Assembly: GCF_022045235.1 (NCBI RefSeq)
Contig: NW_027266275.1
Location: 70,804,001-70,868,000, forward strand
DNA: 64,000 nucleotides
Direction: 5' to 3'
From: Haliotis cracherodii
Taxonomy: Eukaryota
The notes beneath the pieces were generated by a model, which worked only from the letters and a program-made list of their open reading frames with translations, made no database searches and was not told the DNA's origin. How positions within the stretch are numbered: position 1 is the first letter of the stretch; each line of letters begins with the position of its first letter. Shown piece by piece: positions 6,609 to 12,294 of the stretch. The translations under genes were made by a program, and so were the position numbers.

Positions 6609-9600
6609 CTATATAGGACGATGACTGGTTGATGTCACTGGGTTGTCCTTGTCACGATGTTTCTGTAATATCTGTTCGGCTTCATCAACCTACAACAATT
6701 ATCCAAGTATTAGCAGCGTTGCACTTGAGTTAACATTTGCATCAAATACGCAGACCCGTATAACACTGGATCACATTGTAAGATCATATTGAAGCAATAA
6801 CCAAAACTATGATGTTGGCATCAGAAGTTCATGCGTAATGAGGTCAAATAACAATATAATCGGTGTCAAGACTCACTTTGAATTTGAGTTCATCCTCTGA
6901 TGTCATCAATGTTTCAATAGCCTCTGTGTCAAGTTCCAAAAGCATTCCCGTTATTTTCCCTGGATTTGCAGATGTGATGTCCTTCACCTTTGGGTACAGT
7001 CTGTTCCCTAAATACTGGTATCTCTCTTTGTCTGACAGTGTTTGAACATCCACATCCAACTCCTCATTTGACTCTTCTTCTATAGTTTCAAATGTTGGCT
7101 ACAACCGCAAAAGATATTTTCATTTTACTTTGAGAATCACATATAGGCATGAAAAAAAGTAATCATTCAGCAATGATTTTCCAAAGGGCAAAGAATCTAG
7201 GTATTAGCAGTCTAGCTTGGCCTCCCCACTGAGTATCTTGAAATATAATAATATACTGAACAAAAAAGGTTCGGGGTCATAAATGATTTCGCGGACATGT
7301 TTTTCTAGTGAAGACTGAGAACTCAATTATAAATAATATCCCCCAATGTGTTCATGATCCTTTTCTGATTTTCTTCAGTATATATGGCTTTGTTGATTTC
7401 GTAATATTCTTGCCTAAATAATGCTGTCAAGGTCCATGTGGTATTAATAATGTACTAAAAGGGTGTTCATTTAGTTCACCACTGACCTATTCCACCAGGT
7501 GTCCACGTACTTCTGGTCAGAATAGAGTCACCAGTGCTCATGCCTTTGGTAAGAGCCGCCCAATGAGGATAGGGTGAATACGAGGTGTGACCAAACCATA
7601 CCATGTTGACCATGCTTGGCCTGCCTCACCCAAACTCGAGTATATGAATGTTGCCATGATATAACTGGAATATTGCTGACTGTAGCATAAAACAACATTC
7701 ACTCACTCACTCAGCTGATTGGTTAAATAGATTCATATCACTTGTCAAGCAAATAGTTTCATATCACTTGTAAACAAATATATATTATGTTGTGTTACCA
7801 TCGCGTTCTCTTCTGTGTGTTGAGATGGCTCTGCAAATGAGACAATACTTGATGAAATACATCAGTCTGAGAGATGGTGGGTAAATCAACAAGGATTGTT
7901 TCTAAAAATGAGAAAGGACTTGAAATACATCTGTGTCTGAGTGTTGGTGTGTATCTCAACAAAGATAGGTTCTACAAATGAGAAGAAACTTGATAAAAAA
8001 CATATGTCTGAGAGACAAATGGCAGTCTCAAAGCCTTCATGTATATTGATCTGTTTAATCATACATTCTTAACAATAGGTGCCGTCAATAACAAGCCTTC
8101 ACTTATCCTGGAAGAGAACTAATCGTAGCTTGACCTTGGTTTTAAAAGGTAAGTTACCGTTTGTTTGGGAAGCCATGGTGGTTCTGAAGTGTGGTCCATG
8201 AAGAGGCACGTACAGCAATGGTGGTTGTGCTGGTGGTGGCGGCGCTAGATAACGGAAGGTGGGTGGTGCAGGAAACTGTGACTGGAATGGTGGCGGCGGT
8301 GGAACAGGAAGTCCCATTGGATACTGCAGTGATCCAAAAGTCCCTGGCCCTTGCTGTGAGTTACCTTGAACACATTTGACACATCACTGACATCTAACAT
8401 AGCTAATTTTCACATATTTCTATTTTCTGATTCAGTTGATTCAGCTGGTCGGCAGATGTGTGATAATATAATCATCTCCAATATAACTGCTGACTAAAAA
8501 GTAATACTCGTGTCTCAACTCTTATGTGCTTGTAATAAGTGAGTGAGTATGGTTTTACGCCACTTTTAGCAATATTCCAGCAGCATCACGACTGGGGACA
8601 CCAGAAATAGGCTTCACACATTGTACCCACGTGGGGAATCGAACCCGTGTCTTCGGCGTGACGAGCAAACACTTTAACCACTAGGCACTGACCCCGCCAC
8701 AGGTCATAATAAATGACTAATATTGTACTTTCGTAATAGTCAACAGTGATCATTTACCTACCCGGCAAACTTCCATACGTGGAGGGCTGGCGATACCCTA
8801 TTGTTGACGTTTCCCTTGGTACGGAGAAGGTTGTTCCTGGCTGGGGTGGGGGGAAGGCGAACTGTGGATATGTTGGACCCTGGACAGGAGACAAGAAATG
8901 ACGAAAGTATGTACATCAAAGCGTTGTGGGCAGAACGATTACACAAGGAGTGTATACACAGTGTATATGTATGCATGTTAGCAACTGTCATTAACTTACT
9001 TGCAAAGGAAAGCTGGAGACCGCGTTGCCAGGGTGGCAACCAATTTCCTTATTCTGAAGAGAAAGCCACATACTGTATTCACTTTCGAATCTAAAACTAG
9101 CATATGGTACATTTCTATTTGACACAAAGCGACAAAAAACATAATCATAAGAATCCCCTAAAAAAGCAGATACGATATCATGAGCATGTGTTTATGAATC
9201 ACTATCAAATAGTGAAGATACCAGGTGTTAGTCAGTTGTTCACCTACAAAATCATGGGAACATATGGTACAACCTAGTTAGTTGTCTTGCCTTTGCATGT
9301 GTTTGTGACGGTGCCACTGGTTGGGTAGGGTTCGCTTACCTTTTCGCGAACACCTAGTGTCATCACTATTTGAAAGTGATTCATAAACATGATTGTCGCT
9401 TTTATTTACATATTTGAAAAGTTGATCAGGTTCCCTTTTCAGTACCACAAATATGATTTAGCTCACAACAGCTTTTTTGAAGTCCGGGCTTTCCTTGAAA
9501 GTGTAGAAATATTCTTGAAACCTTTGAGCAAGTAAGGGGAAAATACGATTGGCCACACGATCATACAATGAGTTACCTTGTCCGCCTGAAACGATATGAA

Positions 9601-12294
9601 ATGACAAGATATTATTAAATTACCAAAAGCCTGTCAGATGTATTTGACATCATTCCTGTAATTTTCACCACTTTTTTTACGCCAAATGCAATTTGTTTCG
9701 ACAGATAAACTAGTCTGATTTGTCCTCGGGTGTTTACGTTTATCTCATAAATATCTATTGCAAATGAAACAGAAATGCACGCTAGATACCCCGTACTGCA
9801 TCATCAGCTGTAAACACTGATGCTTTGTCCGAAATGTCTCCAGTCCAGTCAAACTCCGTCCTTGTCTGACACAAACACTGAAATGAGTTGGCTTCATCGG
9901 TCATTAACTGCTGGTACACGTTTGCATATTTCTTCTTTAGGCTGTGTTTAAAGGCACTGAAGTCTTTAACATGTCCCTGTAACCGTTTCCATTTATCGTC
10001 ATGACTTAGAGCATCGTTCCTCATGTCATCTGTCACTGCCATTGAAATGATATCGTTACTTAGCATGTCCTCTGCAATGTCACGAAGTTCAACTGTGTCT
10101 TTCATGTAACACACAGAGCATTTATGAAGAACGTTAATGCCTTTGGAACTTGAGAAACTTCTTCTCAGAGTTTCCTCTAAAACGGGATGTTCTTTTTTCA
10201 GAGCTGGAAGAAATTTCTGTTCAAACGCCGCTGTCGTTATTCTTCCATTTAAAAAATGAAGGAAGCGTTCGTTCCGCCTTCTGTCTTTTCGCATGCTCGA
10301 AGCATCAGTGGCAGACATGAGGTCGTCTTCTATCAGCTGGTCTAGCAGCATCGTACGATCCAGCATGAGATCCCTGCGAAGAACGTGGTAGCAATCCCGG
10401 ATGACATGCTGGTGCCTTGTGGAGTGTGAACCTGGTTCCATACAAAGAACACATTGTGTTAGATATTTTCTCATTAATATTTGAATAACTTTACGATAAA
10501 TGGAATGAGCAAGTGCCCCTTAGATAGTGATGGTCAAAACCGTGTTCTTCAAGACCTGCATTGATGAGATCTCTTTTGAATTACGGTAAATTAGAATTGC
10601 TAGATAGATAAATGGCAATGTTCCAGATGCTATGGAATTACGTATTCAAACAATCACACCAAATTTAAATATAAGTACACACACATATACGCATCAAGAA
10701 GGGGCTGAGATGGTATGTGTTGGCAGTCATAATGTTACAACAATCAAAAAGTCAGGATGTTTTTGTGTGGATAATCTTCATTCCTATCCACACTGGATTG
10801 AAAGCACTTATGAAATTGTTCTAACGAGCAAAATGACAATGTATTGACAATGGATAGAATATGTATGTCCAGGATACCCATGTGATACTGGAGACCATGC
10901 TATTTAGCAAATCTCCATGAAATATGAAAAAAATAACTATTATGTATACATTACGGTGGCCCATAAGGGACATGGAGTCTGTTTTTCAATATTTTGATGT
11001 TTCACTTACTTTTATCGTAACCTTTTGCAAATTAACATAATTTGCCATACAAATATGTGATAAATCATGTATAAAACATCCGAAAACATGGAAAATGTAC
11101 TCTCAAGTAGCTATTTAGTCAAAAACTAAAATGGAAATGTCAAAAACCAAAACGAAAAGGTCAAAAACTAAAATGAAACCACAGAAAACTATTTCCATCG
11201 CGGTGTAAATATTATTACCGCGGTGGGAATAGTTTTCACCGCGGTGGAAATAGTTTTCTGTATTTTCATTTTAGTTTTTGACATTTTCGCTTTTGTTTTT
11301 GACATTTTCTTTTTAGTTTTTGACATTTTCGTTTTTGTTTTTGACATTTTCATTTTAGTTTCTGACATTTTCGTTTGGTTTTTCAGCGATTCAATATCTT
11401 CTTTACACATGATTTATCATATATTTGTAAGACAAATCGTGTTAATTTGCAAAAGGTTACGATAAATGTAAGTGAAATATCAAAATATGGAAAAACAGAC
11501 TCCATGTCCCTTATGGGCCACCGTAATACACTGTAGACCACTGATATGTTTTCAATGTTTTTCATATATTCAAACCAGTGGTTTAGTTTTCATGAAAGTA
11601 GTATCTGAAAACTTGTTGTATTTTACTGTTTTAATCAATTATATTCATGTAAAGGGTTGATACTTCTTGACAGTAATCTATCATGTAAGTGTGACTACAC
11701 ATTGTGAGTGAGTGAGTGAGTGAATCTGGTTTTAAGCCGTTTTTTGCAATATTCCAGCAATTTCACGGAGGGGGACACCAGAAATAGGTTTCACACATTG
11801 TACCCACTACACATTGTGAACATACCAACATTGAATGATGGGTATTCAAGCTGATGGGGAACCTGAACATCCATTTGTCTGAATCCTTGCATTAGTGAGT
11901 CTTCATAAAAACGGAGCATGTTCTCTATATCCTGGTCATGGACGCCAACATCTTTACTCAGATTATATGCTTTTTCTGCATATGATTTTACTCTTTCCCC
12001 AAGCATTTGCACACCAAATGAAATGATATTTTCAATGATCGCCAGTACTCCGTCTTGTGAATCCGTTTGACGATCCAAATATGGCTTGGCAAATAATTCA
12101 AAGATTTTTCTGTTGACGTCTTCTAGAGATCGTTCTCCTACTGGTACATTTCTGTTTCCGTCTGGCACAGTTGTGTTATTTGGACTTTGATGGTCATTCT
12201 CCCCAGCATCAGACGTGTCAGACGTCAGGTCTTCAGCGCTATCATACAGAGACTCGTCCGAGTCGGATGTGTTCCTGTGTGTACGAAACTCCAT
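6609..12294 (-). CDS. Predicted ~637-aa protein: acidic N-terminus, two CARD/death-fold-like domains, Pro-rich linker, C-terminal PABC/MLLE domain
   Basis: Exons 12294-11826, 10518-9797, 9585-9577 (9-nt microexon), 9053-9000, 8879-8762, 8364-8158, 7830-7799, 7098-6877, 6689-6609; all GT-AG with compatible phases (1,0,0,0,1,1,0,0); total 1914 nt. The MLLE is clear: YLGNRLYPKV...PGKITGMLLELD...ELKFK|VDEAEQILQKH. CARD-like segment: HVIRDCYHVLRRDLMLDRTMLLDQLIEDDLMS...RNERFLHFLNGR...FLPALKKEHPVLEETL. Probable 5'UTR exon donor at 13129. The acceptor at 10518 and donor at 9797 are weaker sites. Confidence 0.65.
6660..7060 (-). other. PABC/MLLE domain-coding segment (two exons)
   Basis: Signature GKITGMLLE plus flanking LG-RLYP and K|VDEA--L--H, as in PABPC and UBR5 MLLE domains. 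Confidence 0.92.
7252..7382. mobile_element. Short Tc1/mariner-type MITE
   Basis: tatactgaacaaaa ... ttttcttcagtata termini with TA flanks. Confidence 0.55.
7480..7712 (+). mobile_element. Degenerate SINE with the shared 3' tail
   Basis: Ends gatataactggaatattgctgac...aaaacaacattcactcactcactca. Confidence 0.6.
7815..8015. repeat. ~70-bp degenerate tandem repeat (about 3 copies) overlapping the acceptor of the 7830-7799 exon
   Basis: Motif ct(g/a)(c/a)aaatgaga...acttga...acat...gtctgag recurs at ~7831, 7902 and 7972. Confidence 0.6.
8538..8700 (-). mobile_element. SINE family A
   Basis: Reverse complement of the family A consensus. Confidence 0.88.
9172..9400. mobile_element. Inverted pair of Penelope-like element 3' modules
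   Basis: 9172-9230 (-) and 9305-9400 (+) both match the module downstream of the RT at 37660 (aacacctggtatcatcactatttgatagtgattcataaaca). Confidence 0.6.
10952..11525. mobile_element. Foldback/MITE with long terminal inverted repeats and internal 21-bp subrepeats
   Basis: tacggtggcccataagggacatggagtctgttttt... versus ...aaaaacagactccatgtcccttatgggccaccgta; inner arms built from aaaaactaaaatgaaaatgtc units; flanks atacat / atacac (6-bp TSD with one mismatch). Confidence 0.85.
11705..11806 (-). mobile_element. SINE family A, 3' portion
   Basis: (gagt)n plus gcaatattccagcaat...ggggacaccagaaat. Confidence 0.75.

Follow-up and report, generated by a model that had tools for sequence, protein, structure and literature searches.

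A candidate CARD/MLLE scaffold gene in abalone

In the present study, we analysed a gene on the minus strand of a 64,000-nucleotide stretch of the genome of the black abalone, Haliotis cracherodii (NCBI RefSeq assembly GCF_022045235.1, contig NW_027266275.1, positions 70,804,001 to 70,868,000), hereafter the window, in whose own numbering gene and feature positions are given. The gene occupies 12294..6609 and encodes the 647-aa protein XP_071107852.1 (P0056), an "uncharacterized protein" in RefSeq. Collectively, our results indicate that this is very probably a real nine-exon abalone gene, the predicted product of which combines a CARD, a second, CARD-like domain and an MLLE domain. As the best overall explanation we lean, with modest confidence, towards an abalone-restricted, non-enzymatic CARD/MLLE scaffold gene.

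Gene model and domain architecture

All nine coding exons are identical to XP_071107852.1 (9/9, 100%, tblastn), and a search over candidate exon borders yielded a single set of GT-AG introns that reproduces this protein, from the ATG at 12294-12292 to its stop at 6611-6609. The whole-protein steps of the analysis used the database protein, and the exons were searched individually. The first-pass annotation, made from the sequence alone, had placed the span 6609-12294 exactly and had described nine minus-strand exons splicing in frame, the same count as in XP_071107852.1; its junctions at 11826 and 9000/8879 likewise belong to the unique GT-AG solution. Three of its borders have to be moved to fit the protein, namely the exon-2 acceptor (from 10518 to 10431), the exon-2 donor (from 9797 to 9790) and the end of exon 3 (from 9577 to 9467), and the large exon measures 642 nt rather than 722 nt and the product 647 aa rather than the approximately 637 aa given there.

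Intact, collinear frames are present in three species, H. cracherodii, H. rufescens (P0001, 95% identity) and H. rubra (68-70%), the latter two proteins being also "uncharacterized" in RefSeq. The CARD pairs of H. cracherodii and H. rufescens agree at 189/189 positions and their linkers at 120/137. Relative to H. rubra, the domains are 66-80% identical, with the MLLE segment at 66%, and the linker 51%. This domain-wise conservation points to constraint on the protein. Word-based searches that used either the complete protein or its tail (residues 372-647) as the query, limited by their sensitivity and length window, found no homologues outside Haliotis; the fusion thus appears confined to the genus so far, in three species, with its absence elsewhere not proven.

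Both domains of the CARD module are carried by exon 2 alone. This exon is symmetric (phase 1-1), so that skipping it would preserve the reading frame, and an in-frame TAG at 9784-9782 lies two codons past its donor. The joined protein could accordingly be suspected of being an annotation artefact, the true products being a CARD-only protein that ends at this TAG with intron 2 retained and/or a CARD-less protein with exon 2 skipped. H. rubra indeed offers an example of the second form: of two neighbouring gene copies on the same 720-kb contig, P0057 and P0058, the latter (435 aa) lacks exactly exon 2 and hence the CARDs. On H. cracherodii contig C12, there is only one MLLE match. Nevertheless, the same joined model was obtained in three species with independent genomes, each time with canonical splice sites and an unbroken frame; exon 1 is common to the CARD-bearing and CARD-less forms, which argues against a separate downstream gene for the MLLE tail; and two of the species have identical CARD pairs at the locus. 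We therefore regard an artefact as very improbable.

The first helical segment encoded by exon 2 is, on profile and structural-model evidence, a true CARD. An exhaustive phmmer search recovered 55 relatives, and 51 of the 57 aligned homologues match Pfam CARD, the best with an E-value of 1.8e-17. The family profile matches the CARD of APAF-1 at 5.5e-11 and also those of CARD8, NOD1, RAIDD, CED-3 and caspase-9. A phmmer search of the open reading frame (ORF) against PDB sequences gave chance matches only (E at least 0.48). When the 230-aa ORF was modelled by AlphaFold2 (AF2) without an alignment, the result was unusable (predicted local distance difference test score, pLDDT, 39), and an alignment-based run was used instead; with the family alignment, the mean pLDDT was 89 and the model consisted of two six-helix domains. 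Domain 1 of this model superposes in VIA-align on the caspase-9 CARD (5wvc_D) with a Z score of 13.4 and a root-mean-square deviation (rmsd) of 1.9 A over 94 residues, on the Apaf-1/caspase-9 CARDs with a Z score of 12.9 and on the CED-3 CARD with 12.4; a long run of CARDs outranks the PYD, DD and DED folds (Z 6.8-8.0). The top Foldseek rows for the module are CARDs only.

Domain 2 has no match in Pfam and none among PDB sequences. Its profile, however, aligns with that of domain 1 helix for helix over 70 columns in hhalign (96.6% probability, E 5.9e-10), and AF2 predicts for it six helices, mostly with pLDDT above 90. In ESM Atlas, the nearest structures to residues 258-350 are CARD clusters (feature score 0.83, TM 0.58-0.64), which we treat as leads only. 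Foldseek places the whole module on the tandem CARDs of RIG-I and MDA5 over 193-203 columns; the VIA-align result list for the module is occupied by domain 1. On the profile-profile comparison, domain 2 appears to be a diverged CARD-like repeat of domain 1. Thus, the two CARD-like helical segments proposed from the sequence alone correspond to six-helix domains in the AF2 model, and the death-fold similarity, the lack of which had been named as a possible refutation, is found for domain 1 by both profile and structure searches, with the putative CARD kinship of domain 2 coming from profile-profile comparison.

A feature peculiar to domain 2 is a set of cysteines at its borders, a CxxC before helix 1 and a CxC after the last helix. 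Among the 57 aligned sequences, C107 (module numbering) is invariant, and C104, W147, C185 and C187 are conserved in at least 90%. The ends of a death fold lie near each other, and so the four cysteines have the appearance of a zinc clasp; the clasp is probably a zinc site.

The domain encoded by exons 8 and 9 is certain to be an MLLE, as judged from its profile matches. Exon 8 alone matches Pfam MLLE (PF00658) with an E-value of 1e-16 and 61.1 bits (cut-off 27), and the H. rufescens orthologue reaches 66.5 bits, with E down to 2e-18, over positions 2-66/66 across both exons. Among PDB sequences, the closest matches are to UBR5 and PABPC1, in their MLLE domains (3.6e-8 to 1e-6), and the KITGMLLE signature is exact. 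Among the 18 PABPC1 residues listed as contacts of the PAM2 motif (PMC2854688), 14 are identical in ungapped alignments, including the whole G-KITGMLLE stretch as well as K606, E609, A610, L614 and H617, and the other 4 are conservatively changed (E564N; F567Y, as in UBR5; I588L; V613I). We note a further, divergent MLLE in one open frame at G000:C5:35294866-35295060 (L006; signature AQITGMLLD, 57.9 bits, positions 3-66), which may belong to another non-PABP, non-UBR5 abalone MLLE protein.

The remaining parts of the protein are less distinctive. In the part encoded by exon 1, an acidic, Ser-rich N-terminus precedes a helical region (residues ~56-150), of which residues ~78-150 are weakly and collinearly similar to the pre-CARD stretch of the family (hhalign 85.7%, hmmsearch 19.8 bits); a phmmer search with the N-terminal region matches the paralogue P0015, and ESM Atlas returned only generic helical look-alikes for residues 50-156. 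The 39-residue exon-3 peptide (residues 372-410) has no family match and is the best conserved piece of the protein relative to H. rubra (90-92%, with the linker beside it at 51%). The linker is P/Q/G-rich and about 135 residues long, and both it and the KITGMLLE-bearing MLLE domain had been recognised at first sight. The absence of RRM and HECT domains, also proposed there, holds for the 95%-identical H. rufescens orthologue, in which Pfam to an E-value of 0.1 finds the MLLE only and no RRM, HECT, UBR box, caspase, helicase or C-terminal regulatory domain. In addition, a caspase (Peptidase_C14) hidden Markov model built from five family members misses P0056, P0001 and P0057. On direct reading of XP_071107852.1, the C-terminus past the MLLE is a polar tail with no hydrophobic stretch. 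The coordinates of exons and domains are collected in Table 1.

Table 1. Coding exons and predicted domains of the CARD/MLLE gene, in window positions
Feature	Position	Strand	Description
Coding exon 1	11826..12294	-	469 nt; residues 1-156 and first base of codon 157; donor G|gtatgt; matches XP_071107852.1 residues 1-157, 100% (tblastn)
Coding exon 2	9790..10431	-	642 nt; phase 1-1; residues 157-371; borders cag|GT and GG|gtatct
Domain 1, CARD (by profile and model)	10148..10423	-	residues ~160-251
Domain 2, diverged CARD-like (by profile-profile comparison)	9857..10120	-	residues ~261-348
Coding exon 3	9467..9585	-	119 nt; residues 372-410; short strongly conserved peptide
Coding exon 4	9000..9053	-	54 nt; P/Q/G-rich linker begins
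Coding exon 5	8762..8879	-	118 nt; linker
Coding exon 6	8158..8364	-	207 nt; proline-rich part of linker
Coding exon 7	7799..7830	-	32 nt; linker
Coding exon 8	6877..7098	-	222 nt; acidic stretch, then MLLE (from ~7047) through helix 4, including KITGMLLE
Coding exon 9	6609..6689	-	81 nt including stop; last MLLE helix (to ~6666) and polar tail; residues 622-647, 100%

Several introns of the gene hold repeats. In intron 1, positions 10950-11527 are occupied by an element resembling a miniature inverted-repeat transposable element, with 126-nt inverted arms (10950-11075 and 11402-11527; 93% complementary) and an interior of 21-nt tandem repeats (11230-11397) that are palindromic with 11118-11209. 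Copies of a short repeat that combines a tRNA-like core with a (CACT)n-type tail lie at 8538-8630, 11715-11807 and 7654-7713; the copies are 86% alike in direct orientation, one is inverted, and the repeat is probably an abalone short interspersed nuclear element. Other long ORFs nearby in the window gave no informative Pfam match.

Family and origin of the fusion

The CARD module has about 20 matches in the H. cracherodii genome, most of them in single open frames of 220-315 aa, and those family members whose origin was looked up belong to Haliotis species or to the snail Gigantopelta. Six of the 57 members carry a caspase domain; among these six are proteins named caspase-8-like or caspase-10-like as well as P0005 (AYK02334.1), which was deposited under the name of H. 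diversicolor "caspase-8". In H. rubra, P0002 (XP_046564218.1) has two CARD plus CARD-like modules followed by a TIR domain. In the maximum-likelihood phylogeny of the module, a single clade (100/100) unites the three MLLE-bearing sequences and is nested in a 26-row group (99/100) together with all caspase-bearing members and the TIR member; relations inside this group are not resolved on the tree. In the paralogue P0015, a phase-1 acceptor lies at the equivalent place, 7-8 codons before the CARD. We also observed four tandem caspase genes of the family at G000:C56:65.98-66.02 Mb (L016, L018, L019), in which, unlike in the single-exon form, an intron lies inside the CARD.

The 3' end of the gene carries a different signature. 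Exon 8 ends in ...LKFK|gtgagt, at the same residue and in the same phase as the ...LKAK|gtaggt of the abalone PABPC genes, whereas at the abalone UBR5-like locus (L007) the MLLE intron lies elsewhere, between helix 2 and the KITGMLLE helix. The simplest reading is that the gene was assembled by exon shuffling from a 5' part of the CARD family and a PABPC-type 3' end, and that this presumably took place a single time, before the lineage of H. rubra separated from that of H. cracherodii and H. rufescens.

The PABPC genes themselves form a tandem cluster of 3-4 genes on the plus strand at G000:C1:19.60-19.65 Mb (L028-L033, L001-L004), in which sets of RNP1 motifs recur and four KITGMLLE exons, nearly identical to one another, lie within ~45 kb. 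Descent of the linker from PABPC was also considered and is not shown: the best tblastn match of residues 372-547 to 60 kb of this cluster has an E-value of 1.7, so that the linker does not detectably resemble the PABPC region.

Proposed working and alternatives

The gene structure, domains, family and groove conservation described above are shown by the analysis; from them, we infer possible binding partners, expression and the direction of any effect on caspases, activation or damping. The adaptor and decoy functions put forward in the first-pass annotation are likewise inference. In a tentative mechanism for the scaffold reading, to which we give somewhat less than even weight, the CARD pair would take part in homotypic death-fold assemblies, most plausibly with the paralogues, caspase prodomains included. 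Proteins with a PAM2 motif, such as translation-termination, deadenylation or PABP-regulatory factors, would be bound in the MLLE groove, and the bivalent scaffold would thereby bring CARD/caspase assemblies and PAM2-bearing mRNA factors into contact. The sequence would fit substrate recruitment, platform localisation and damping of the kind exerted by CARD-only proteins alike. A more specific formulation, in which the CARD-pair scaffold links PAM2 factors to a caspase platform or a PABP-mimicking guard turns PAM2/PABP interference into caspase activation, appears rather doubtful.

Binding of a PAM2 partner was modelled by docking residues 556-640 with a 38-residue stretch that contains a canonical PAM2 motif (Pfam PAM2 above cut-off) and is encoded in the same genome (L021:1471-1584). 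The docking score was 0.37, against 0.01 for the best of 3 controls; the runs share at least 74% of contacts, and the partner pLDDT is at least 54. In calibration, the mark applied is reached by 51/78 solved complexes and 2/108 mismatched pairs, and scores of 0.60 or less comprise only 5/78 solved complexes but all 4 passing mismatches (of 180). MLLE-PAM2 complexes have already been solved, so the predicted pass may reflect likeness to them rather than proof of binding, and it lends weak support.

Besides this weak docking result, several points weigh against the scaffold reading. For the protein itself, the Pfam CARD (PF00619) match of exon 2 (E 0.17, 12.3 bits, positions 2-83/85) falls below the cut-off of 23.9, and the death-fold status of domain 2 comes from profile-profile and indirect structural evidence. 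The small number of family members with a caspase domain means that the term "caspase prodomain" covers part of the family. No PAM2 motif was found in 77 family proteins with an ELM-type and a looser pattern; the MLLE thus does not simply bind its own relatives, and the idea that it binds a PAM2 motif in itself or in them was rejected. As regards the gene, every protein model derives from one prediction pipeline, and read-based assemblies contribute no member to the protein cluster of XP_071107852.1. Finally, the restriction of the fusion to a single genus would also fit a gene that is young and of minor significance. Lineage-specific shuffling of death-fold domains is frequent in molluscan genomes, and such free shuffling, together with the restriction to one genus, lowers the weight of the finding.

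Two other ways of working deserve consideration. The protein may be a prodomain-only damper, which enters and caps the caspase assemblies of its paralogues in the manner of CARD-only proteins or c-FLIP, its MLLE serving only localisation or turnover, for example by docking PAM2-bearing ligase cofactors. The analogy with CARD-only proteins and c-FLIP draws on established knowledge, the N-helical region and CARD pair of the family are present with no protease domain, and the tree places the gene in one supported subfamily with every caspase-bearing member. However, nothing separates inhibition from recruitment, and the conserved PAM2 groove suggests a specific MLLE client rather than a passive tag; we consider a damper unlikely.

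The other possibility is a tripwire, or integrated decoy, in which the MLLE end mimics the C-terminus of PABPC, and the CARD pair, released or clustered once this end is attacked or bound, would provoke a caspase response. Such a protein would be akin to CARD8 and NLRP1, which sense viral proteases; the C-terminus of PABPC is often targeted by such proteases and by PAM2-mimicking factors. The position and phase of the 3' intron of the MLLE exon, common with abalone PABPC, suggest descent from a PABPC 3' end; the long low-complexity linker ahead of the MLLE echoes the PABPC layout, even though it has no detectable likeness to the PABPC gene region (E 1.7). Relatives of the module include caspases and a TIR protein, and the linker and MLLE segment, 51% and 66% identical to those of H. 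rubra, appear to be fast-evolving. Abalone have, in addition, been reported to be without a conventional MAVS (PMC11103948), which makes unusual CARD adaptors plausible. Against this stand the position of the CARD, on the N-terminal side of the putative bait, and the absence of an autoprocessing domain of the FIIND kind; nor is there a known cleavage motif or viral partner. The PABPC-type intron and the fast evolution of the tail speak slightly for the decoy idea, which is, on the whole, improbable. Of these ways of working, we retain the bivalent CARD/MLLE scaffold as the preferred one.

Significance and comparison with known systems

Molluscan CARD-caspases, "caspase-Y" and DED-caspases have been described previously (PMC7836458, PMC11463336). 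In the papers searched, we found no CARD-MLLE protein and no second CARD-like domain in molluscan caspase prodomains; the gene and protein identifiers occur in no paper of the literature searched, and the papers that contain both MLLE and "CARD domain" are unrelated. The architecture, which the first reading of the sequence had found unfamiliar, is thus not described in these papers, and the joining of CARD and MLLE appears to represent a new combination of known domains. The module of a CARD and a cysteine-clasped CARD-like domain likewise appears to be previously undescribed; it would constitute the prodomain of abalone caspase-8/10-like proteases and would have been shuffled as a single exon.

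To our knowledge, animal MLLE domains occur in two contexts, PABPC and UBR5. If our reading is true, the abalone protein would be the first hard-wired link between the PAM2/PABP interaction network and death-fold assemblies, and this third MLLE context would provide a testable handle on the coupling of cell death and innate immunity to mRNA translation in a mollusc. Abalone suffer herpesvirus and bacterial epizootics. At the same time, the reported absence of conventional MAVS in abalone is accompanied by unusual antiviral signalling parts (PMC11103948). Lineage-specific CARD adaptors of these animals are therefore of practical interest.

Reuse of the MLLE has precedents. An MLLE protein outside PABP is the plant MPC. 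Fungal Rrm4 carries three MLLEs (PMC11572963). In both, the MLLE is reused as a peptide-docking module, in an RNA-transport or PABP-derived setting and never together with a death-fold domain. PABPC itself shares with the abalone fusion a five-helix MLLE with KITGMLLE, located C-terminally after a long low-complexity linker. Nevertheless, the linkers are unalignable, the N-terminal half of the fusion is death-fold rather than RNA-binding, and the fusion has no RRMs and hence no poly(A) binding of its own. UBR5/HYD provides the best PDB match (3ntw, 36.9 bits) and has the RLYPKV-type helix 2 and the MLLEL variant in common with the fusion, which, however, lacks the HECT, UBR box and UBA domains and is far shorter (647 aa versus ~2800 aa).

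Among CARD proteins, RIG-I and MDA5 resemble the fusion in having two CARD-fold domains within ~200 residues (Foldseek probability 0.96; VIA-align Z 10.7-10.8 for domain 1). Unlike these RIG-I-like receptors, the fusion has no helicase or C-terminal regulatory domain, its two domains are differently oriented (rmsd ~16 A) and the second bears a cysteine clasp that is not a feature of the receptors; in sequence, the module is closest to the apoptosome-type CARDs of APAF-1, caspase-9 and CED-3. A CARD and a proline-rich region are reminiscent of MAVS, but the fusion, by direct reading, ends in its MLLE and polar tail and has no hydrophobic stretch. CARD-only proteins, c-FLIP and ARC share a caspase-type prodomain and the lack of catalytic activity, and we know of none that has an MLLE or a link to the poly(A)/translation machinery. 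The closest counterparts are found in abalone themselves: the caspase-8/10-like proteins (AYK02334.1, P0005; XP_071115293.1, P0014) have the N-helical region, the CARD and the Cys-bracketed domain in common with the fusion, at 25-33% identity, and whereas they continue into Peptidase_C14, the fusion, devoid of the protease, continues into a linker and an MLLE.

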